DNA of 64,000 nt, taken from NCBI GenBank assembly GCA_000708835.1, contig DF237387.1, positions 1 to 64,000 on the forward strand, given 5' to 3'. Below the pieces are notes generated by a model. That model saw nothing but the letters and a program-made list of their open reading frames with translations, had not been told where the DNA came from and did no database searches. The position numbers were made by a program, and so were the translations under genes. Positions 43,490 through 55,800 of this stretch are shown here, piece by piece (position 1 is the first letter of the stretch; each line of letters opens with the position of its first letter). This DNA is from Klebsormidium nitens. Lineage: Eukaryota; Plantae; Klebsormidiophyceae.

Positions 43490-43775
43490 GGCCGTGGCGA
43501 CGCTGAAGCCAGACGTGCCGGAGGTTTGGGAAGGGGTTTACAAGCCCCAATGGCAAGAGTAAGATTTGGCGGGTGCAAACTCGAGTGCAACACCAGCCTG
43601 AGTCACCTAATACGTGCTACCTATCATGACACTTTCACGAACAGCTTGTGTTGACAGTATTATAGAGGCCTATGCAGGAGCTGCATTCTAGCTCTCGCAG
43701 CTAGAATTTTGGCAGCTAGTGGTTTATGAGGAGGCGCCGCCGCCATCTCCTACCCCAGCCCCCCTGCATGGCGGC

Positions 43776-46700
43776 ATGGCTGCAGCCCTTCCCCTGCTGG
43801 ACAGCGTCTCCCGCGCGCTGACTCGCGGCAGCTTGCCTGCCTTGCGTGCAGCATACCGGCGCTGCTTGCATTGCCAATTGGGATTATCTGCAAGACCAGC
43901 TGCAAAGCGCGCAAGGGCTGCCAAAGGTCCTCCTTTTTCGTCCTTGCCAGCCATTCACCGTCGGCAGTCCGTATCCGAAAGTCCGGGACATAATTTCGCT
44001 GGTGGTGGTACTGAATTGCTGGCGTGCAAAAACCCGCCCACTGTTCTCTGGTCTCTAAGCTCGTTCCGCTCGCCGTTGCTGGGGGGGCCGATTTGCACCA
44101 CCTTCTCTCGCACACCACAGCTGACTGACAACCAATTTGGCCACAGCGTTTCTCCACTTTGCGCAGCAGCAATTGATGTGGAGCTCGAGGATGACTATGG
44201 CTACAGGGAGGCGGCAGAGTTGGACGAGGAGGAAGAGGAAAGGGAGCCCGCCCGAGCATCTCGGGATCACGGCACGGAGGAGCGCCTGGTGGCCAACGAG
44301 AAAATGCTGCAGATTAACAAAGCAGGTGACTGCACAGCCGAACCGTCACATCGTCACACGTTTGTTCCGCCGTACCACCACACGTGCTGGTTCAAATCAG
44401 GACTGAGGAGGAAGTTTGAAGTTCGTGAATCAGGACTAGTTGTCTCGCATAGAAGGGGTTCGATTCATCTACACACTTGTTCAACAAGTGTACGCCTTTG
44501 GAAAAGTTGACGCCTTCGCAGACAGGGCGTAATGCTCCATCGCTCACTATCGTCCATTCAATCTAAGCTTTCCTCTCTGTTTGCAGACTTTACAGTCAGT
44601 TCTTTACTGGACAAGATCTCACGGGCCAAGCTCAACCTGAAACCAGCATACCAGGTACGCTGCTCAGATGCGTTTCTCGGGATTATCACTACAACAACAT
44701 CTGATGTGACAAGCGGTGTCCCCTGCCGTCAATCCGTGTTTGCGTGTAGCTCAATCAGGCACGAGTAGTGTGAGCTTCTTTCGCAATCGGTCTTGGGTCA
44801 ACCAAGCCAGCGGGGCATAAGGCTTTGCTGTTGCATGTGCTCAATCGCTGCTGTCACATCCGGTGCAGAGGGACTACGTCTGGGACAAGAAGACGGCTAG
44901 CAAGCTCATAGAGTCACTCCTGGTGAGCTGACTCGTGTCCAGCATTTGCCATGGATGAGTCCACGTTGCACACTCTTGGCTTGCTGACTTCCTTTCATCC
45001 TGTGTCTCTGACTTCCTTCTTTGCGTTGCTTGTTTCCCAGTTGAGCCCCATCTTAGATGCATGCTCACCTTTCTTCGACTCCCTTACTGTGCGTTACTTA
45101 TTACGGAGGGGTACTGTGTGCAGCTCAACATTCCCGTCCCCACAATGTTCTTCCACGAAAAGGTATGCCCTGGCCCCCACTCTCCGCAACTTCCCGGCTT
45201 AGGCATCAGTCTCCCGTTTCAATTGTCCACCATGCCCTTTGTTTTCTTCTTAAATATACTGTACCCCAGTTTCAGATATCTGCCATAGAGCTACAACCGA
45301 TGGGTGTGGAATGGCTTGAACTCCCGAAATAACGGATGTTACTCTCGTGAGCATCGTGAAGGCGAATTCGAGGGTGCCAGGATTCCCTTTAGTGATCTAA
45401 AATGGGACGAATATCGAAGTCTTTGAATGATGAAAGGAATCAAACAATGCCATGCTTTTAGAACTAGAGGCGGTGACGATGCAGGAGCGCGGCAAGCTGG
45501 AGGTGGTCGACGGCAAGCAGCGCCTGACCAGCATATGGTCCTTCATCGTCGAGGAGCGCTTCCCGGACGGCACCCAATTTCACCTCACTGGCCTCGAAGT
45601 CTTGCGCAAGGTATGCCTAGAAACCTCTTCAGTTACATAGTTGTAGCGGGCTTTTGCGTGGTCGAGGTGGGCTCGAAGAAGCGCACTGGTTTGAGGCAGG
45701 CACAACGCCAGCTCGCAGCTGCAGCTATAAGGTCGAGGAACTTTCCTCGAATGCATGTTATCAATGGCCATCTTCGCTTGCTCGGCTGTTCGAAGGGAAG
45801 ATAAACTTTGATCTATGATCCTGTACAGGCAAGTAAGCCGCGCAACCTTATTTTGAAATGTCGGAGTACAAAGCTGTGCATCCTTTCGTTGACAAGAAGT
45901 CTTCGGTTTGACTACGAAACTTTCGTGTTGCTGCGCTAGCTGTTTGCATTGGTCCTAGGACTGCCAAGGATCGCTCTTTATATCGAACTCAGGAAAGATA
46001 CTTGCAAGGACGTTGATGAGATCACTTGACTAAGGACGGATATCGTTGGATTGGAGCTTAGGAGTTGGTAGGGGTGCGGAGGAGGTACCTTTTGCGGTCC
46101 GATTACTCGTAGCCTGACCTTATTCTCTTGGTCTATGAACACTTTCCTAAGATCCATGCTCTGTGTGTGCAGCTGAACGGTCTGCTGTACAGCGACTTGA
46201 ACGACGACCTCAAGGAGTCGTTGCAGGACTACGCGCTTAACGTGCACACCATCAGCCGCCACTCCGACGAGGACGTCGTGTTTGAGGTGCGTTTGCATTT
46301 CGTGATCGTTACAAAACGTGGAGCCACTCTCAAACAGCCATGTACCAAACCGTGGGAAGGCGAGTTCTAAGAATAAGTATCGAGGTCTTGCGCACACCGC
46401 GGTATCTCCTTGGAGTATCGGTTTCGGGGCACCGGCCTGGGATTCCCATCCCTTGGCACCGTTGCACCCCCTCTGATTCAATCATCACTTTGCAACACGT
46501 CCTTCGTAGCAAAGTCTGGGTCTTGTTGCGAGGTTCGTGCCTTAATATAGCTCAGGAAAGAAAGCCGTCGTACGATATCCTTTTCGGTTGCCCACGTAGA
46601 ACCTTGTCCCGCACGCCTATTCAGGTGTTCGATCCGGCCTCCCGTCCTGACCGACTCAGCGGCATCCGCCGGTCTTGGTACTTTTGGCCCCATATACCCA

Positions 46701-49155
46701 TACGCGGATTGTCCGATGCAAAGATGGATTGCAGTGAATGTTTATTTACCTTCCTTTCATGTTCAGGTGTTTGAGCGGCTCAACATGGGCTCCACGCAGC
46801 TGAACGAGCAGGAGCTGCGCAACTGCATCTACCAGGGCACGTACAACAGCCTCCTCGAAGACCTCGTCCTGGACGGCTACATGCTGCTCGCCATGCACGC
46901 CGACGCGCCGCACAAGAGGTGACTGGTCTCGAGTTGCATTTGATAAGCCTACAAGTCTGCGTAGGGCATGCATGGCCACGTCAAGCAGTCAACGGCGATG
47001 GGCCCCCGAGAGGCTGTACCTTAAGTTTAGTCCGTGAGAAAAGGCTTAGACCTACTGAGTGTGCATTCATGAAGCTTGGAGCTCCGACGCGCATTATTAA
47101 GGTGATTAAGTCGAGCTTTGTCCTTCACTTTCTTGGTAGCTTTTCCCGTCCTCAGGAGGCGGCACCCCGCAATTGCCTCCTCCGTTTCGTGGGACCTGTT
47201 CTCGCTTGCACACTGCGCCGCGCCCACTGTGATCCTGAAGCGTGCGTGGTGCCACGTGCAGGATGCGCGACCGGGAGCTGCTGCTGCGGTTTTTTGCGCT
47301 GCGCACGACCGGCGTCGAGGGCTTCATGCTGCCCGTCAAGACGTGGCTCAACGAACAGATGCGCCAGTGAGCCCCGCCCCAAATGATCCTGGAAGAAAAA
47401 AGCAGTAGCCCAAAACGTGACGACCAAATCCTGAGAAGGAAAAGGAAAAGTAACAGGACTGGGAAAGGCAAGATACAATCAGCCGCACTAAGGACCGATA
47501 CCCTGGACTCATAAGTTCACCTGTTTCACACCGCACCTAGACACCAAAATAAAGCGTACCCGTCCCGACAGGGTGAACTTGATGTTGTCCTGGCTTTACA
47601 CTAATATCTTGACTTGTCAGTATCCTTCTCCACATTACCCTATTTCCGCATGAACAAAGTTTTCCCTGACCCCTAAGTTGCAACTTCCAATCGTGTCCTT
47701 TAGTATGATCGCGCGTGGATCCCCTTGCGTGCAGCAACATGGACGTGTCGACCGAAGAGGCGGCAGCCATGAAGGCGGACTTCGTGCGGAGCGTCCGGCT
47801 GGCGGTGGAGGTCTTTGGAGAAGACCACGTATTCCGCGTCCTTCGGTGAGCCTGTTTCCGGCTTCTGGGTTTAGACTTTTGGGGTCGTTGATTCGTGATC
47901 TTCATTGACTGGGTCGCCGGCATAGAGAATTGTGCTGTGTGAGAAATGCTGATACGCATTGCGATAACAAACACGGAGGCTGCAGTCAATAGGGTAGGGT
48001 TCATTAGGACACCAAACCAACCGATGTGAAGGCGGTATTCAGTGCTGATAAGACCGAAAAGAGATTTGCATCTCCATTTTATGAGTTGCTTAGTCTCCTT
48101 CAATCCTGCGATCACGCGGATCGGCCACCATTGCAAGTTTCGTGACCGGCCGCAACGGCTACTGGGCTGCCTCCTAGCGTTGCGGCACCAGAAACGTCTC
48201 TTACGAAGGTGTAAGAGGACATCATATCGTGCGCGAGTCGCAGCAACTTCCAGTCTCCGAGCATTCGTTTGTTTCGACCACCAAGCCATTGAGCTTCATC
48301 TGTGTAAGCGAGTGACGGCTGAATTTGCGCAGGAGAGCATGCGGCAGCTGGGTAACTAGTGTGGGGGCGTGTCGTGCAGGCCCGGAGTGCGCAAGGCGGA
48401 CGAGCCCAAGTGGGACTCGGAAGTAAATGTCGCTCTCTGGGACACCGTCATGGTTAGTTCTGTATTCCCGCCGCACATCGCGCATCGCACATCACTTAGA
48501 CGATTTGTCGTTCTTTTTAAACCTCCGCGGCATTGGTTCAGATTTAGAAAGGTTAATCCAACAACTGGGTGTGCCAAGTGCGCTTGTTGTGCTCACAGAT
48601 CAGAAAAGCAGAAGGAGAAAGAATTGCGTCGAAAAAGTCGCTCCTACCGAAACGCGCTTAAACGGCTTGTTTGCCCTGTGCAGTTCGGTTTCTTGCAGTT
48701 TCAGGACGATGACGGCATCCTGGCGGCCCGGAGCGAAATCAAGAAAGCGCTCATGGACCTGATGACAAAGGTAAGCCAATGCGATGTGCCAAGAACATCC
48801 ACGTTCTGGCTGCTAATGCGCGACAGGTACTCCCATGTTTCGTCCTAGTGCGAAGTGGGAAAGAAACGAAGCAGACACGATGAAGCCTATGCTTATCAGG
48901 TGCTCTTGCAACAGAGAACCCTTCAGGGACCCTCTTTTAAGAACCAACTGATAATTTTCCCCTTCCTGATTGACATGGTATGCGAATCTTCTTAAGTGCA
49001 CTTTTGTTGAGACAATGAACTTATTCAATCTTCAAATGCAGGATACCGAATTCCGACGCGCACTCGTTTCCAGCAGAAAGGCACTCAAAACCCGCTGCGG
49101 TAAATGGAATAAAGCACTTGGTAAGGTCCTCGGTTCGCCACCTGTAAGAGACTAG
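43776..49155 (+). CDS. DUF262 (GmrSD/SspE N-terminal, ParB/sulfiredoxin-like NTPase) family protein with N-terminal transit-peptide-like extension, 12 exons, ~530 aa
   Basis: Exons 43776-44325, 44587-44654, 44869-44922, 45124-45162, 45485-45610, 46173-46286, 46767-46918, 47262-47366, 47735-47845, 48380-48452, 48684-48770 and 49042-49155 are all GT-AG and phase-consistent (1593 nt). Translation contains [46 protein letters not shown] and [13 protein letters not shown], i.e. the QR / DGxQR / FxxxN hallmark motifs. Confidence 0.92.
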
Positions 49156-49858
49156 GGGTCTCTCAAAAAAAGGTGGGACAACTCGAGATCGTCAAGGTCC
49201 AATACATGAAGTTGGAAAAGTTCAGTCGATGGTTCTAAAGTTGGATGCCATCAAGATGATGAGCACGTGAGAACGCGACCGGTGCTCCCATAAGATATAT
49301 GCCTACTGTACATTTGACTACGGGTCTTCCGTACCAAGCCACGCACCTGGGACAAACCAGAACTTCAATATGGATGACGTGCACTATCCCTTGCATTCAT
49401 ATGGCAAGAGCGCAAAAGTGGCCGGACACGCAGGAAATCAATAGAATTGCACATGTGTGGTCGACCGCCGCACACGCGCGGCAAAGTTCCCTGGCCTAGC
49501 TCACATGAGAACTGCATGAGTAAACCAGCTTTATAAAGGCCATATTTGACCACAGAGTCGTGTTGAACATGTGGAACGACTTGATTGCTATTATGTATAG
49601 GCCGCATGTACTGATGCACATGCAACATGGTTCATCCGCGGTTTTGCCGCTCTGGGGGAATAGATAACGCGTACGAGATTAGCCAATTACGCGAACAATG
49701 CTCACGCAGCCGTTAAATGCTCAATTGGATGATTAGGCTGCACGACCTTGCCCATAAACTGAGCGTCGAACCGGCGTACAACATCACGCAACTTTAGTTC
49801 CAAGACGCGGCCCCTTCGAACGCCACTTGAGCCCCTCCGAGCAGACTAGCAACTCCCA

Positions 49859-52800
49859 TTACGCCCCGTTCTGCTTCGTTTCCGTGCTCGCCCCCTCCAG
49901 CTTCCTCAGAAACTCCAACGTCTTAGTGTACGCAACATCTTGCCGGTTCAGCGGCTTGCACGCGTTCACGTGATCAGTCCCTCTGAGCACAATGAGATCC
50001 CCAAAGCCCGGATAGGCTGACTCTATTGGCACCACTTCCATGCGCAGCTTCACGCCGCCGTACGCCTCCACGACGGGGGTCACCTTATCCTCGCTGAAGT
50101 TGATGACGTCCACCTGGCGAACGCGCATTGGACGGCGGGTTAGGCAAGCAACCTCCGGTTAGGTTCCAAACCTCTGCTCTGACTTCTGCATGACGCCTCG
50201 GTTTACGTGCAGACGTGCAGGACCACTCCGAAGGCCCAAAGAAGGAGACGCTTGCGAACCATCTGTTTTGACGTGTATAGGACGCTGAATGCGCGTTAAC
50301 CCGAAAAACCCGGACATCACCCTACAGAGCCGGCTTGCTTACATTACCCTTCAGAAGCCAGTTTGAATGCCGGTTTGTTTGGGGACCGCGAAAACTGCCC
50401 ACCTGAGTTTGAGGCTTAGGACTAGGCTACGGAGTCTGCGTAATCAAGCAATTATGGAGACAAACATGTGTACATCAGTCGGATGCCCTGGGGATCGCCT
50501 CAAGCACTCAACCACTCACCCGGCCCTTCTGGTACTCCTTTTTGAGCAGCTTGTTGAGCTCCTCCAGCCGGGGTGAACCAGACCGCAGCTCGCCGACCTG
50601 CGAGTACCGGATGGGTTTTGCTCACCGAATTTATGCTTGTGCAAACCCTGCTCGAAAATGAGGCACTATCCATGGACAGTTTTCCGGAGATGTAGGGCTG
50701 GGTAGGCAGAAACAGAAGTGAGACGCAGGTGTCTAAGTTGACGTCTCCATCCGAGGCCGGTGGGAGGCCAGTAGAACAAACGGGCACTTGTTGGTGGTCA
50801 GGGAAGAGACGTGAGGATGACGCAAAGAACTAAGGGAAAAGCACACAATTACAGAATGGAGGCGAAACGGAGGTTAAGAACAGAGTTGGAAATAGTAGAA
50901 ACAACATCAATCTTTGAAGTCAACTCACTGCGGCCGCTGGCCGCAGCACGACGCCCATGCGCGAGGGCAGGTCCGCGAGGCGGCTGCCAAAGTGCGGGCA
51001 GCTGTAGAACACGATCCCCCGGATCCGCTCCCCGAGCGCCCGGTACTTCTCCTCCGACCGCACCAGCTGCAGCATCTGCTTCGCAACCAGGCCCCCCAGC
51101 GAGTGCGTCACAAAAATCACCGGGCGCTCGCCAACCCCGGCCGCGAGCAACTTTTCCAATAAGTGCGCGCTTAACTCTTGCAATGGGAGGGTGGCCCCCG
51201 ACCACTCAGTCAGGTTGGTTTTGTACTCGGTGGACAGCAACCGGGCGGAAGGCAAGTCTTTCGCGAGCCAGTCGGTGGGCCAGCAGCCGTCGCCCTCGCG
51301 CGGCCGGTCCTCTTCCCGGAGGTCTTCTACCACCCCCCCGGCTTTGATCGCACTCGTTTTGTCGTCCGTCATGCGCCAGGTTTTGTACGCGCCCCCCATG
51401 AGGCCGTGGATGAAAACCACGTCGAGTGCCGGCTCGGAGATCAACGGTTCAGGGCAATCCCCCTTTTCCGGGGGGTGGGGGAGCTGTACGGGGCTAGATC
51501 GGGCGCCGCTTGCGCCGTCGACCTGACCCTCTCCCGCTCTAGTTGCCGCTGAGTGCATGCTAGCCGGCGCGTTAGGCAACAGCTTCTCTACTCCTACTTT
51601 GACCGCTACTTTTTGCCGTGACGTGACCTCGCCCTGTCTGTCCGAAAACTCCTGCAGCACCTCGCGGACACTGTCCGCTGTATCACCCGGCTGATCATTC
51701 CCAGTGGCAGCGTCCGGTTTACTTACTCCCTCACTTGTTCCGCTCTTTCCGTTTCGTTCAGTTGCGTCGCCCTTACTATGCTGCGCACCAACTGCTCCGC
51801 TTCCCTCAGAGGCTATCCCCTCTTCCGCTTGTTCCGACGCTCCCACGCTCTCAGTTCCGAGCGACTCTTCTCCCTTCCCTTCGCCTATGACCGTCGCCGC
51901 TGGGTGCACCAATCCGGGCACTTCGCCCTCGCTCTCCTGCCCACTTTCTGCCTCCCCTTGGCCTGCGCTTCCTACTGGGACCTTCGCGCTCGCCGCTCTT
52001 CCACCGTTCGAAACTTCCCTCTCACTCGAAGCCCCCTTCAAAGCTCCGCCCTCCCTAGCTTCCTCAACTTTCGCTGCTTCGCCCGTTCCATTCGAACCCA
52101 GATCCGTTACTCCGGCCGATTCGTTCGCAATCTGACCTCTCGACCCTCCACTCAAGCACGTGCGAAAGTGCGGGGCGGTCGGATCAAGCAGGTAGATTCC
52201 GTCAAGGTATCGAGGCCAAGGTTTCAGTTCCAGCCCCTCCCCCTCTCCCGTCCCGCACCGCTTCCAAAACGCGAGGTGCAACAGCGTCTCCTTCGCAAAA
52301 CTCCGCAGTTTCAGATCGCCTTTCTGGGCTGCCACCCGCCCGTCGGCGACCTCTTCCAGCCAGTTCACCAGCGCCTGGTCGCCCCCAAGAAGCGCCCCCA
52401 ACTGCGGATGAATCGACAAATTTGCCAGAACTCGCAGCGCATGACGCTTCACATACGGCCGTTTCTGCTTCGGCGGCTTCGCGGGCGCTTTCCCGTTCTC
52501 CTTCGTCACCCCCGCGCCCTCGCGCGCGCTCTGCCACTGCTGCGTTGACACCGTCGCGCCGAAGTGGGCCGATCTCAGAAACTGTGTCAAGAGCGCGTAA
52601 CCCCCCGCGTCCAGCACGCGCCGCTGCCGCGCGCCGTCCTCGGCGATCACCTCCGCCAGCGCTTTCAAAGCGTTCGACACCGCGAGCAAAACGTCCGCTT
52701 CGGCGACCGGCTTCGGCGGGCCCTTCCTGCCGCCCCCGAACGAAAACCACCCGCGCTTCTCCGGCGCCACGTCAGCTGCCACGTCAGCACCAACCGTCAC

Positions 52801-55800
52801 CGCCTGCTGGGCCATAACTTTCTCTAGCTGGTCGAGCGCGGACTTCGCAGCAACCACCGCTTGGTTCTGCAACACTCCGTGTGCGTCCGTCGGTTTCGGG
52901 CCCGCTTTTTTGGCGTCGTTACCGACAAGCGATAACAGAGTCGCCAGCCATGCCTCCATTAGTAGTTTCCCGTCGGGTCCAAGCGCATCGATGCTCAATT
53001 GAAGGGTCGCAGTAGCGGACGCACGGACGTCGGGGGGGCTCGCAGGATGCGACGTCCACTTGAGGAAGATCTGCGGAGAGGCGTAAACGGTTGGTAAGCT
53101 GTGCTCAAATCAGCCGCGTATGAGAGACAATCGTCGATGGTCATCTGTTTCTTGAGATCCATGAGAATTCGACGTAAGTGCTCCCTTCTCGTGAGAAGCA
53201 GAAGCCCTTACTCACCTTCGAGGAAACACGAGATCGTTGGACTGCATGAAGGGTCTCTCGGCGACTATACAGGGCGGATCATCAGTACGCTTGATGGGGC
53301 CACAGTCGACCAAACACTAACACTAGCCAGTGGCTATCTTCGCAGACCGCAGCCTCCAGCGGCGATCCAATCCGGTTGCACCGCCCTTCTCTTCTCTCCA
53401 GCCCCGCACAGAAGAACAAGTACAACTGTCACGACACACATGACATCTCACCGGGATCCAAAGCTTCAGCTCGTCCTTGTCCACGTCCCCCTCCCTCGTC
53501 AGCAGCTCCAGCAGCCCCGCCAGAGGCCGCTGCACGGCGCCCCCCAGGCGCTCGTCGGCCGCCAGCCGCCGCAAAACCCCCAAACCCTGCGCGCCCAGCC
53601 ACCCGCGGCTCTCGGGGCTCCGGTTGGCGCACGCGCCGAGCGCTCGAACGCCCGTAGACGCCAGGGCGGAGATGCCCCCCGGGGAGAGGCGGCTCGGGAG
53701 GGCGGGGTCGTGGAAGAGAGTGCCGGCCAGCATGCCAAGGAGAGGGGGGGTCCACGTGGCAGCCGCGCCTTCGGCCCTGGATGAGGGGGTGGAAAGAATT
53801 GGTGATTTGAAGGAATCCAGGCAGTCTTTCCTTGCATGAAACCAAAGAAGTTCCAACGGCAAGTCCTTGGAAAAGGTAGCCCTCACCACCTGTGCTATAA
53901 AGTTCAAAGACCTACGAAAGATCAAGCGGAGAGGGTTACGCTTTATCAGGAATGTGGTGAAGGATAACGCGTGACCAAGTCGGGCAAGATTATACCTGAC
54001 ACCAAGCACCTATTGTTAAACGCTTCTTGATCCCTTGGTTTCTTTATAGACCGGAATACACGAATTATCAAAACCTTTGATGATGCAATTCTCACGTCCG
54101 CAGGGATCACCAACGATCCTGCTAAAGCCATATCGAGCAAGAACTAATTATGTCGTCGTTCAATCTGGAAATGATGGGTCTTTCGACTCAGGCGCTCTCC
54201 TTCAATGCAACAAACAGAAGGCTTGCTTACCACTCCGTCTGGTCTTTCGCAAGCTCCTCGATCGCCCTCGCCGCATGAAACTGCACGCTCGGATCGGGGT
54301 GCCTCAGCGCAGCTTCGAGCGCTCCCCCATCGCCGTCCAGGCACGCAATCTGCTCCCTGTTTTTCGGCGACCCCGCTGCCCACGTGGCAACAGCCCACGT
54401 CGCCAGCTGGCCGCCCAGGTTGATCTCGTCCAGGGCGGGGCTGCTCTCGCCCCCCAGTAGGAAACTACCGAGGCCGCTCGGCCCGCTGCGCAAAGGGTGA
54501 TCTCGGCGAACTACACCCGGAATATGATCCGGGATGGTGAATCCTACCTTCCGAGGCGTGCTGTTTACTGCAGACTGTTCTAGCGGTGGTACACTGTCCG
54601 CAAAGACTCCTCTGAACAAGCCGAATGGTTGTTGACTGATGAACAACGGCTGGGAACTTGAAGTAGATGCCTGGGAATGGCTCGATCTCCGCTTCTCGTC
54701 CCCCTGACCGACCGCGGCGCTCCTTTCCGACGAAGGGATCCCTTTCAGGTCGCCTTCTAAAACCTCCCGGCCTGAAGAAGAAACGCGCTCGCTTCCTTCC
54801 CAAGCCCGCTGAACGCCTACGATAGACGTGTCTCCCAAAACCCGGATCCCGATGCCCTGCACTCCGCCGCCGTCCCTTCCGCCCAGGCCCCTCTTCCGCC
54901 GTTCCTCTTCTTCGTCCAAATCCCGCTCAAACGAGCGCATCTCTTGCAACGCCGTGGCGATGTCGTCAGGGTCTGCGTCGGAAGACAGGTGGATGCCACG
55001 TGTCCAGCTGCTGACGTCAGGCCCCGCGACGAGCTTCGCGAGAGAAGCGACCAGAAGCCTCTGGCCGGGGTGGGCGTGGTCGATGTCTTCTAGGTCCTGC
55101 AGAGGGGGTGGAAGCTGAGGATAAGTCGCTGTATGACGGAGAACAAAAGCTAGGCCTCCTTATTCGAGTCTCCATAGCTGCATTTCAGAGCGCTGCGTGT
55201 GTAATCGCTTGCCAATGAATTTGCTTTGTCGACTTCGTCTATGGTAAAAGAAGGGTCACGGAGGACGATTGAGCAGCAGGAGGGATTACTCGAATCGTTC
55301 TTGCCCAGCAGGACGTCTTACGAAGTAGAGCACGACTCTTCAAAGCTTAACGGAAACGGGAACATAATCTGTATGATTGTCGAAGCTCCATCGTCGTCAA
55401 ATGCAAATCCATTCACCGCCCCCTCATTCCTTAGCCCTCAACCCAACAAGATTCTAGCACAACTTATCAACTGAAAGTTCTTAGACGAACTCGAAAATGG
55501 AAGAACCAAACCAAGCCTATCAGAACCAGTCGAAGACATTTCCGCTGAGGTCTCACCTCTTCCAAGTCCCAGTCCCTGGTTGGGGGCAGCATCTGCACCC
55601 GTGGCAACATATCACAATACTTCAACAGCCGCGGCACGGCCCCCCGCTGCGCCAGGACCGCCCCCGCCGTCCTCTTGTCGTCCAAAAAGTAGCCCAAAGC
55701 CCGCGCCGCCTCGTTCCTAACCGCAGGTTCTTCCCGGCTGACCTGCCCCAGTAACCACCGCAGGATCTTCCCCTCCCCAGCGCGCGCGATTGCGTTCCGC

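Follow-up and report, generated by a model that had tools for sequence, protein, structure and literature searches.

Gene structure and expression

The window examined in this work is the first 64,000 nucleotides, read on the forward strand, of contig DF237387.1 from the Klebsormidium nitens assembly GCA_000708835.1. On its plus strand, at positions 43776-49155, lies a 12-exon gene for a protein of the DUF262 family, which to our knowledge is discussed almost only within phage defence (GmrSD, BrxU, SspE, DndI and Menshen). The gene belongs to an ancient, vertically inherited, uncharacterised family of the green lineage. It was rebuilt from the raw sequence by combining the open segments of three reading frames with GT and AG splice sites, and the joined coding sequence of 1593 nt stays open throughout, encodes 530 residues and ends in TAG. 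Each of the 11 introns runs from GT to AG, and the acceptor reads tgcag in 10 of them.

RNA contigs covering region 43500-49400 were taken from four runs, each from a different study; two organism labels are attached to these runs. The same 11 joints are present in all four runs, base-exact and with no further joint; exon 1 in particular is uninterrupted. The original prediction, made from the sequence alone, had described 12 exons, 11 canonical and phase-consistent introns and a protein of ~530 residues, and had named RNA as the check on its junctions; reconstruction and RNA contigs bear out this model at every junction in every run. Its exon size of 39-152 nt fits the internal exons only, since exon 1 has 550 coding nt. 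The transcript spans ~43642 to at least 49376 in the contigs of the four runs. In addition, 20 RNA-type runs contain 22-51% of the sampled words of the locus, of which the exons make up ~30%. The base composition of the window is moderately GC-rich (about 0.48-0.62) and eukaryotic in character. The locus represents a nuclear gene that this streptophyte alga expresses.

The 5' untranslated region (UTR) occupies 43642..43775, the RNA contigs starting at 43642 or 43645 in the four runs, and holds two upstream open reading frames on the plus strand: one of 10 codons at 43672-43704 and one of 31 codons at 43726-43821, which contains a second ATG at 43768, lies in another frame and overlaps the main ATG. 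The two may control translation of the DUF262 gene. The 3' UTR extends from 49156 to at least 49376, with RNA contigs reaching 49303-49376. Some contigs read through introns 8, 9 and 10 (47337-47764, 47817-48408 and 48423-48712) at a word depth of 5-12, compared with 27-92 for the spliced form, and may represent unspliced precursor, retained introns or DNA carry-over. In one RNA run, a G>T difference is seen at 48137 within intron 9. The next gene downstream is a long open frame on the minus strand (50920-52998) with weak alpha/beta-hydrolase or PGAP1-like matches (E ~1e-4) and is unrelated to the DUF262 gene.

Domain organization and conserved motifs

The conserved core of the window protein comprises residues ~168-526 and is composed of a ParB-fold DUF262 domain followed by a helical DNA-binding domain of ~185 residues, termed ParBDB. 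Exon 1 (43776..44325; residues 1-183 plus 1 nt) encodes the N-terminal extension and the start of this core. The last residue of exon 2 (44587..44654) is the glutamine of motif I (QRxxxW), and exon 3 (44869..44922) opens with the remainder, RDYVW, such that motif I, QRDYVW in this protein, is cut by intron 2; the joints 44325>44587 and 44654>44869 are those seen in the four runs. The short exon 4 (45124..45162; 39 nt) is followed by exon 5 (45485..45610), in which the nucleotide-binding centre of DUF262, motif II (DGKQR), lies at 45509-45523. Exon 6 (46173..46286), whose flanking introns are both shared with Marchantia and Chara, covers DUF262 between motifs II and III. Motif III, FERLN, lies at 46770-46784 in exon 7 (46767..46918), in which DUF262 ends and ParBDB begins (ELRNCIY...). 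The ParBDB domain continues through exon 8 (47262..47366), with R, D, L, R and F columns that are invariant between eukaryotic and bacterial proteins, exon 9 (47735..47845), exon 10 (48380..48452; NVALWDTVM) and exon 11 (48684..48770). Exon 12 (49042..49155) ends in the TAG stop at 49153-49155, and the protein thus finishes at the point where its bacterial relatives run on into an HNH nuclease.

Direct reading of the spliced coding sequence confirms the three DUF262 motifs that had been predicted. Pfam PF03235 (GmrSD_N, formerly DUF262) matches exon 5 at profile positions 56-77 (27.1 bits, E 5.5e-6) and, collinearly, exon 7 at positions 177-198 (15.8 bits, E 0.015). Both matches fall under the cut-off of 33.2 bits because the exon pieces tested are only 42-50 residues long. 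Orthologues that are 59-63% identical to the window protein match profile positions 2-198 with 93-106 bits (E ~1e-30) and contain no other domain, and the predicted membership of DUF262 therefore holds. Exon 12 also gives a weak match to HNH_repeat (15.8 bits where 26 is required, E 0.019) and exon 5 one to Pyrid_ox_like (E 0.073); neither is found in the orthologues, and both were rejected as noise. Among 90 relatives, variation at the motif residues Q, R, D, G, Q, R and N is absent or nearly so, and motif II is invariant at D, G, Q and R. All aligned eukaryotic members have DGKQR as motif II where nearly all bacterial members have DGQQR, a clade-wide change that would fit an altered nucleotide preference.

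The prediction had further placed the protein among GmrSD/SspE-type factors. The family assignment to DUF262 stands, but GmrSD and SspE carry DUF1524, and the profile comparison points elsewhere. The PADLOC model of NsnA (PDLC03877) matches the core of the Chara orthologue with E 1.5e-87, over model positions 38-375 of 385, and that of the Marchantia orthologue with E 1.1e-81, compared with 1e-5 or weaker for SspE and the other DUF262 defence models. Judged by these profiles, the closest defined bacterial family is NsnA of Menshen, not GmrSD or SspE proper. NCBIfam gives no match for the orthologues or for the bacterial relatives.

The claimed lack of an HNH or DUF1524 domain is upheld by three approaches. 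Pfam detects neither on the exon pieces or in the closest orthologues. A tblastn search of the window with seven bacterial HNH tails returns no HNH remnant, the best matches being scattered (E 0.04). In the alignment, all 29 eukaryote-like rows are without HNH, and the Pfam HNH domain is found in the bacterial relatives only.

Orthologues across the green lineage

With exon 7 as the query, a profile-free search against 1.84 billion representatives uncovered the family, giving 266 matches; local comparison of the spliced window protein with full-length proteins among these matches gives scores of up to 500 bits. Named orthologues come from Chara braunii (CBR_g17162), Spirogloea muscicola (three models) and Mesostigma viride, from the liverworts Marchantia (MPTK1_5g12430, the single orthologue in this plant), Riccia and Calypogeia, from the hornwort Nothoceros, from the ferns Adiantum, Pteridium and Ceratopteris, and from the chlorophyte Mamiellaceae sp. 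RCC2288 (Mamiellophyceae-type). Identity to the window protein is 63% for Chara (378 residues), 62% for Marchantia (357 residues), 61% for Adiantum (361 residues), 59% for Spirogloea (386 residues), 54% for Mamiellaceae RCC2288 (381 residues) and 41% for Mesostigma, a long branch (379 residues), compared with 36-40% for bacterial proteins over 327-393 residues. These values suggest that the core is under strong purifying selection. One of the Spirogloea models (P0004) has an insertion of ~27 residues in ParBDB just after the conserved LWD motif (NVALWD in the window protein; alignment columns ~535-580), unique among the members and probably an intron that the annotation failed to splice out.

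The family further includes dozens of clusters from marine and freshwater metagenomes, and their contigs are eukaryotic. One member (P0202) is adjoined by genes for a starch synthase and a PP2A B'' subunit, and another (P0173) by genes for Elongator ELP1, an AP2 factor and NdhM; beside a third (P0230), the gene calls are fragmented, as expected of intron-containing DNA.

No orthologue from a seed plant, moss or lycophyte was returned, also with a fern query, for which the land-plant matches are ferns, liverworts and a hornwort. An orthologue at ~70% identity, the level observed among land plants, would rank at the top of such a search. The distribution resembles that of other plastid-related functions retained in early-diverging lineages only. 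The two word-indexed searches, neither of which returned the full-length window protein itself, gave no red-algal or glaucophyte member; short fragments 86-91% identical to exon 7 (P0002, P0003) are present in the exon 7 search of representatives.

The proteins of Chara, Marchantia and Riccia carry the automatic database label 'GmrSD N-terminal domain-containing', and the presence of the domain in these plants is therefore not new. A literature search found no paper on the age, distribution, intron history, affinity or HNH loss of the green-lineage DUF262 family. A survey of ParB CTPases was based on PF02195, and DUF262 lies outside its coverage. The original prediction had proposed an undescribed function in one green alga; the search found no paper to the contrary, but the family is Viridiplantae-wide and not peculiar to one alga.

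Vertical descent and intron history

A 90-row maximum-likelihood tree (quick IQ-TREE run, LG+C20 PMSF model) places all 29 eukaryote-like rows on one side of a single branch, with a Shimodaira-Hasegawa-like approximate likelihood ratio test (SH-aLRT) support of 99. Within the eukaryotes, 13 streptophyte rows form a clade (support 99) in which the window gene diverges first, followed by Chara, Spirogloea and the land plants (hornwort, liverworts and ferns), in agreement with the accepted species order for an alga of Klebsormidium grade. Mesostigma has a long branch, and the chlorophyte-type sequences constitute a second clade.

The intron positions tell the same history. The Marchantia gene (5.4 kb) and the Chara gene (56 kb) have 15 exons each, with all 14 introns common to both. 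Nine of the 11 introns of the window gene lie at the same alignment column and in the same phase as in both of these genes, among them introns 1 and 2 (phases 1 and 0, respectively). Introns 3 (44923-45123) and 4 (45163-45484) are private to the window gene, and Marchantia and Chara carry five introns that it lacks. Intron 4 is offset by 5 nt from intron 3 of Marchantia and Chara, which could reflect intron sliding or independent gain. The nine shared introns, together with a tree in species order, show that an intron-bearing nuclear gene existed before these lineages separated, and since Mamiellophyceae-type algae also have the gene, its age reaches back to the base of the green lineage. Domestication long ago, as originally proposed, is thus well founded in both the introns and the gene tree. 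The closest homologues form a eukaryotic family that is vertically inherited but not characterised.

Predicted structure of the core

An AlphaFold2 model was built from the 90-row alignment for the core of the Chara orthologue and has the DUF262 fold with a helical domain after it, with a predicted local distance difference test score (pLDDT) of 91.4 and a predicted template modelling score (pTM) of 0.85. By VIA-align, the model overlays on BrxU with Z 9.0 over BrxU residues 1-420, that is, all but the BrxU nuclease, and on the N-terminal part of SspE with Z 7.6; DndI is also matched. Sulfiredoxin and ParB/Noc proteins follow in the range of Z 5-6, sulfiredoxin reaching 6.2. Global template modelling (TM) scores from Foldseek are low (0.2-0.3) because of domain re-orientation. 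A sequence search of the PDB gives a marginal BrxU match only (E 0.017). Among the Swiss-Prot entries of AFDB, no characterised eukaryotic look-alike was found, only archaeal MJ0686 and ParB/Noc proteins.

Bacterial relatives and origin

The nearest bacterial relatives are single-chain DUF262-ParBDB-HNH proteins (PF03235 plus PF01844). An alignment of nine eukaryotic and 12 bacterial members is collinear, starting ~20 residues ahead of motif I and continuing through ParBDB, after which the bacterial proteins run into the HNH domain (CxxC...DH...N...HRYCN) and every eukaryotic protein stops (alignment columns 640-720). A scan of prokaryotes with one genome per species gave 472 relatives, and about 20 of the 28 most similar are cyanobacterial, of the Leptolyngbya, Nodosilinea, Halomicronema, Phormidium and Oscillatoria type; the protein atlas returned bacterial DUF262 clusters only. 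In four cyanobacterial genomes, the DUF262-HNH gene stands alone among housekeeping genes, with different neighbours each time, and in a Bradyrhizobium genome its neighbours are a HerA helicase and a serine recombinase. Neither NsnB nor NsnC adjoins the gene at any of these five loci, so the direct relatives are one-gene DUF262-ParBDB-HNH proteins and not three-gene Menshen systems.

Two side observations concern the bacterial proteins themselves. The Leptolyngbya-type clade (L003, L004, L006, L012, L015, L017, L028 and L037) has an altered HNH motif in its C-terminal ~85 residues, CHVCWKP...DDAxxAH...NARLDHRFCH, compared with the usual CxICxQ...DDAExDH...NARLTHRYCN, and its gene sits among housekeeping genes as if it were a resident rather than a mobile defence gene. 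Some genome bins assigned to different phyla contain identical DUF262-HNH proteins (L013 and L014, Caldisericota and Minisyncoccia; L080 and L082, Bacillota and Bacteroidota), which points to recent horizontal transfer or binning errors.

The tree joins the eukaryotes at a three-way split between the eukaryotes, a mixed cyanobacterial clade and all other bacteria and archaea. The mixed clade unites cyanobacteria with alphaproteobacteria, Pyrinomonadaceae (Acidobacteriota), Deinococcus and a Chthoniobacterales genome, and the eukaryote clade lies outside it in the maximum-likelihood tree. Nesting of the eukaryotes within the cyanobacteria was considered and receives no support from the tree, though the approximately unbiased (AU) test does not reject a clade of the two: forcing them together costs 10.9 log-likelihood units (AU p 0.32), so that endosymbiotic transfer is possible. 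Descent from the cyanobacterial ancestor of the plastid, as opposed to an unrelated bacterium, is given less than even odds. In its favour, besides the test, are the predominance of Leptolyngbya/Nodosilinea-type cyanobacteria among the most similar genome matches, the housekeeping setting of the cyanobacterial genes and the presence of the gene in the common ancestor of Chlorophyta and Streptophyta. Against it are the position of the eukaryotes outside the mixed clade, the shallowness of the cyanobacterial clade and its derived HNH motif, the want of a red-algal or glaucophyte member in the searches and the horizontal movement of the family among bacteria, to which the identical rows from different phyla belong. 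Of the original proposal of horizontal or endosymbiotic acquisition, bacterial ancestry is retained and either route is possible, with cyanobacteria leading the similarity list and the eukaryotes not nested among them.

N-terminal extension

Residues 1 to ~165 of the window protein are not conserved, conservation starting at residue ~168-178. The extension is rich in alanine, arginine and serine and basic at its start, with 12 arginines or lysines and one acidic residue in the first 66 positions and 14 alanines in the first 60, and an acidic patch (18 aspartates or glutamates in 45 residues) precedes the core. By composition only, 10 of the 15 proteins examined have 0-3 acidic and 7-15 basic residues among their first 60. 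The same layout, a basic, hydroxylated and acid-poor start with an acidic stretch next in most cases, is adopted by unrelated sequence in one Spirogloea model, Marchantia, Riccia, the ferns, Mesostigma, Mamiellaceae RCC2288 and several metagenomic members. These compositional features suggest that the N-termini are organelle-presequence-like and may direct the proteins to organellar DNA, the plastid being a more likely destination than the mitochondrion.

Proposed function and alternatives

The architecture is most consistent with a bacterial-type, nuclease-less DUF262-ParBDB protein that acts as a nucleoside triphosphate (NTP)-switched factor for binding DNA or sensing its state, probably on organelle DNA, and that has been inherited across the green lineage; a probability of roughly 0.6 is assigned to this reading. 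In this scheme, an ancestor of the green plants would have taken up a one-gene bacterial DUF262-ParBDB-HNH nuclease, possibly from a cyanobacterial donor; the cutting domain would then have been lost and an N-terminal targeting region gained, with the sensing half kept under strong purifying selection. By analogy with the bacterial enzymes, NTP is most likely still bound and hydrolysed at the pocket formed by QR, DGKQR and FxxxN. As in ParB, BrxU/GmrSD and SspE, the NTP cycle would switch the conformation or the oligomeric state and thereby gate the grip on DNA through the ParBDB groove. The protein itself would not cut DNA; with the cutting domain gone, its output would have to be binding itself, in the form of clamping, marking or recruiting, probably on organelle DNA.

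Several points weigh against this proposal. No linked effector through which the predicted sensor would act is apparent in the sequence. The N-termini of Spirogloea P0004 and Chara are not presequence-like, possibly through mis-annotation, and a nuclear or cytosolic role is possible. The structure was predicted for the Chara orthologue and not for the window protein, and the eukaryote clade falls outside the cyanobacterial clade.

A more specific version of the proposal is that the sensing half of a one-gene restriction enzyme, kept for about a billion years, was re-aimed at organelle genomes as a ParB-like clamp or sensor of plastid or mitochondrial nucleoids. This version is tentative and, on balance, doubtful; if true, it would add a previously unrecognised factor of organelle-DNA maintenance that seed plants later dispensed with.

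Among the rival functions, a retained immune role fares best, in which the protein would be a nuclear or cytosolic sensor of foreign DNA (such as that of giant viruses) or of modified DNA, signalling to an unlinked effector as NsnA is proposed to do to NsnB and NsnC. The best profile match is indeed to the sensor of a defence system, DUF262 senses modified DNA in GmrSD and SspE (PMC12065111), and the family is kept in algae, bryophytes and ferns, with no seed-plant member returned by the searches. However, the gene is single-copy and slowly evolving, at 54-63% identity across anciently split green lineages, the N-termini are organelle-presequence-like, and no partner gene adjoins it in the window, homologues of NsnB and NsnC not having been searched for genome-wide. 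Immune sensors usually diversify and duplicate. Taken together, these observations make a retained immune role unlikely.

It is considerably less probable that the DUF262 domain is itself a nuclease, in which case the loss of HNH would not have ended DNA cutting. Possible nuclease activity has been described for proteins with the ParB/Srx fold, such as Osa and plant sulfiredoxin (PMC4619093), and the modelled fold resembles sulfiredoxin; in the characterised DUF262 enzymes, however, it is the His-Me finger domain that cuts, with DUF262 serving as the NTPase or sensor, and the sequence offers no hint of a new active site. A recent horizontal transfer, a bacterial contaminant or a relic in decay, for which the bacterial affinity of the domain is the only support, is ruled out by 11 spliceosomal introns removed in the RNA of four studies, nine of them shared with Chara and Marchantia, by the agreement of gene tree and species tree and by an intact frame with invariant motifs.

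The preferred reading, a nuclease-less DNA-state sensor, has a wider bearing. Bacterial defence modules that survive in eukaryotes are under active cataloguing, and the gene is relevant to the study of defence genes carried from prokaryotes to eukaryotes: as an old, conserved and always nuclease-less sensor gene, it is a natural experiment on the sensor half alone. Marchantia has a single orthologue and is genetically tractable, which makes the question of function directly testable.

Comparison with known systems

NsnA, the proposed DNA sensor of the Menshen anti-phage system, is composed of a ParB-DUF262 domain and ParBDB (Li et al. 2025, PMC12065111). Similar to NsnA, the window protein presents the motifs QRxxxW, DGxQR and FxxxN followed by ParBDB, and the profile match covers nearly the whole model. 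The main differences are that the window protein is eukaryotic, is encoded by an intron-rich gene and has a long N-terminal extension, and that its motif II is DGKQR rather than the DGQQR of nearly all bacterial members. Neither NsnB (an ABC ATPase with DUF3696) nor NsnC (inPIN plus nuclease) is encoded beside the gene, the neighbouring open reading frames of the window being unrelated; the rest of the genome was not searched.

The bacterial DUF262-ParBDB-HNH proteins, for example those of Phormidium sp. LEGE 05292 and of the Leptolyngbya type, are uncharacterised, are sometimes labelled McrA-like, and are 36-40% identical to the window protein over ~330-390 residues and collinear with it. Unlike the window protein, they end in an HNH domain of ~70 residues (CxxC...DH...N...HxxC) and have no presequence-like N-terminus.

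The BrxU/GmrSD type IV restriction enzymes (PDB 7P9K) and SspE (6JIV) share the fold of DUF262 plus a helical middle domain, and the NTPase motifs. ParBDB, an eight-helix DNA-binding domain, is also the 'middle' domain of GmrSD, SspE and DndB (PMC12065111). Identity to the BrxU, GmrSD and SspE proteins is only 14-22%, and GmrSD and SspE, which act in phage defence, have a DUF1524 His-Me nuclease at the C-terminus. Enzymes of this type cleave or nick modified DNA in an NTP-dependent manner, SspE in partnership with sspABCD, and ssp genes would not be expected in a eukaryote. The window protein is nuclease-less and belongs to a different DUF262 subfamily from GmrSD and SspE.

More distantly, the N-terminal nucleotide-binding fold is shared with the ParB/Noc CTP-gated DNA clamps and with sulfiredoxin, and the arrangement in which a DNA-binding domain comes after an NTP-binding ParB domain is that of ParB (PMC12065111). 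In contrast to ParB/Noc, the window protein has no helix-turn-helix motif, no C-terminal dimerisation domain and no parS/ParA context, and the two belong to different Pfam families (PF02195 and PF03235). The protein, a homologue of NsnA, is best regarded as representing a eukaryotic, nuclease-less branch of the DUF262-ParBDB family.

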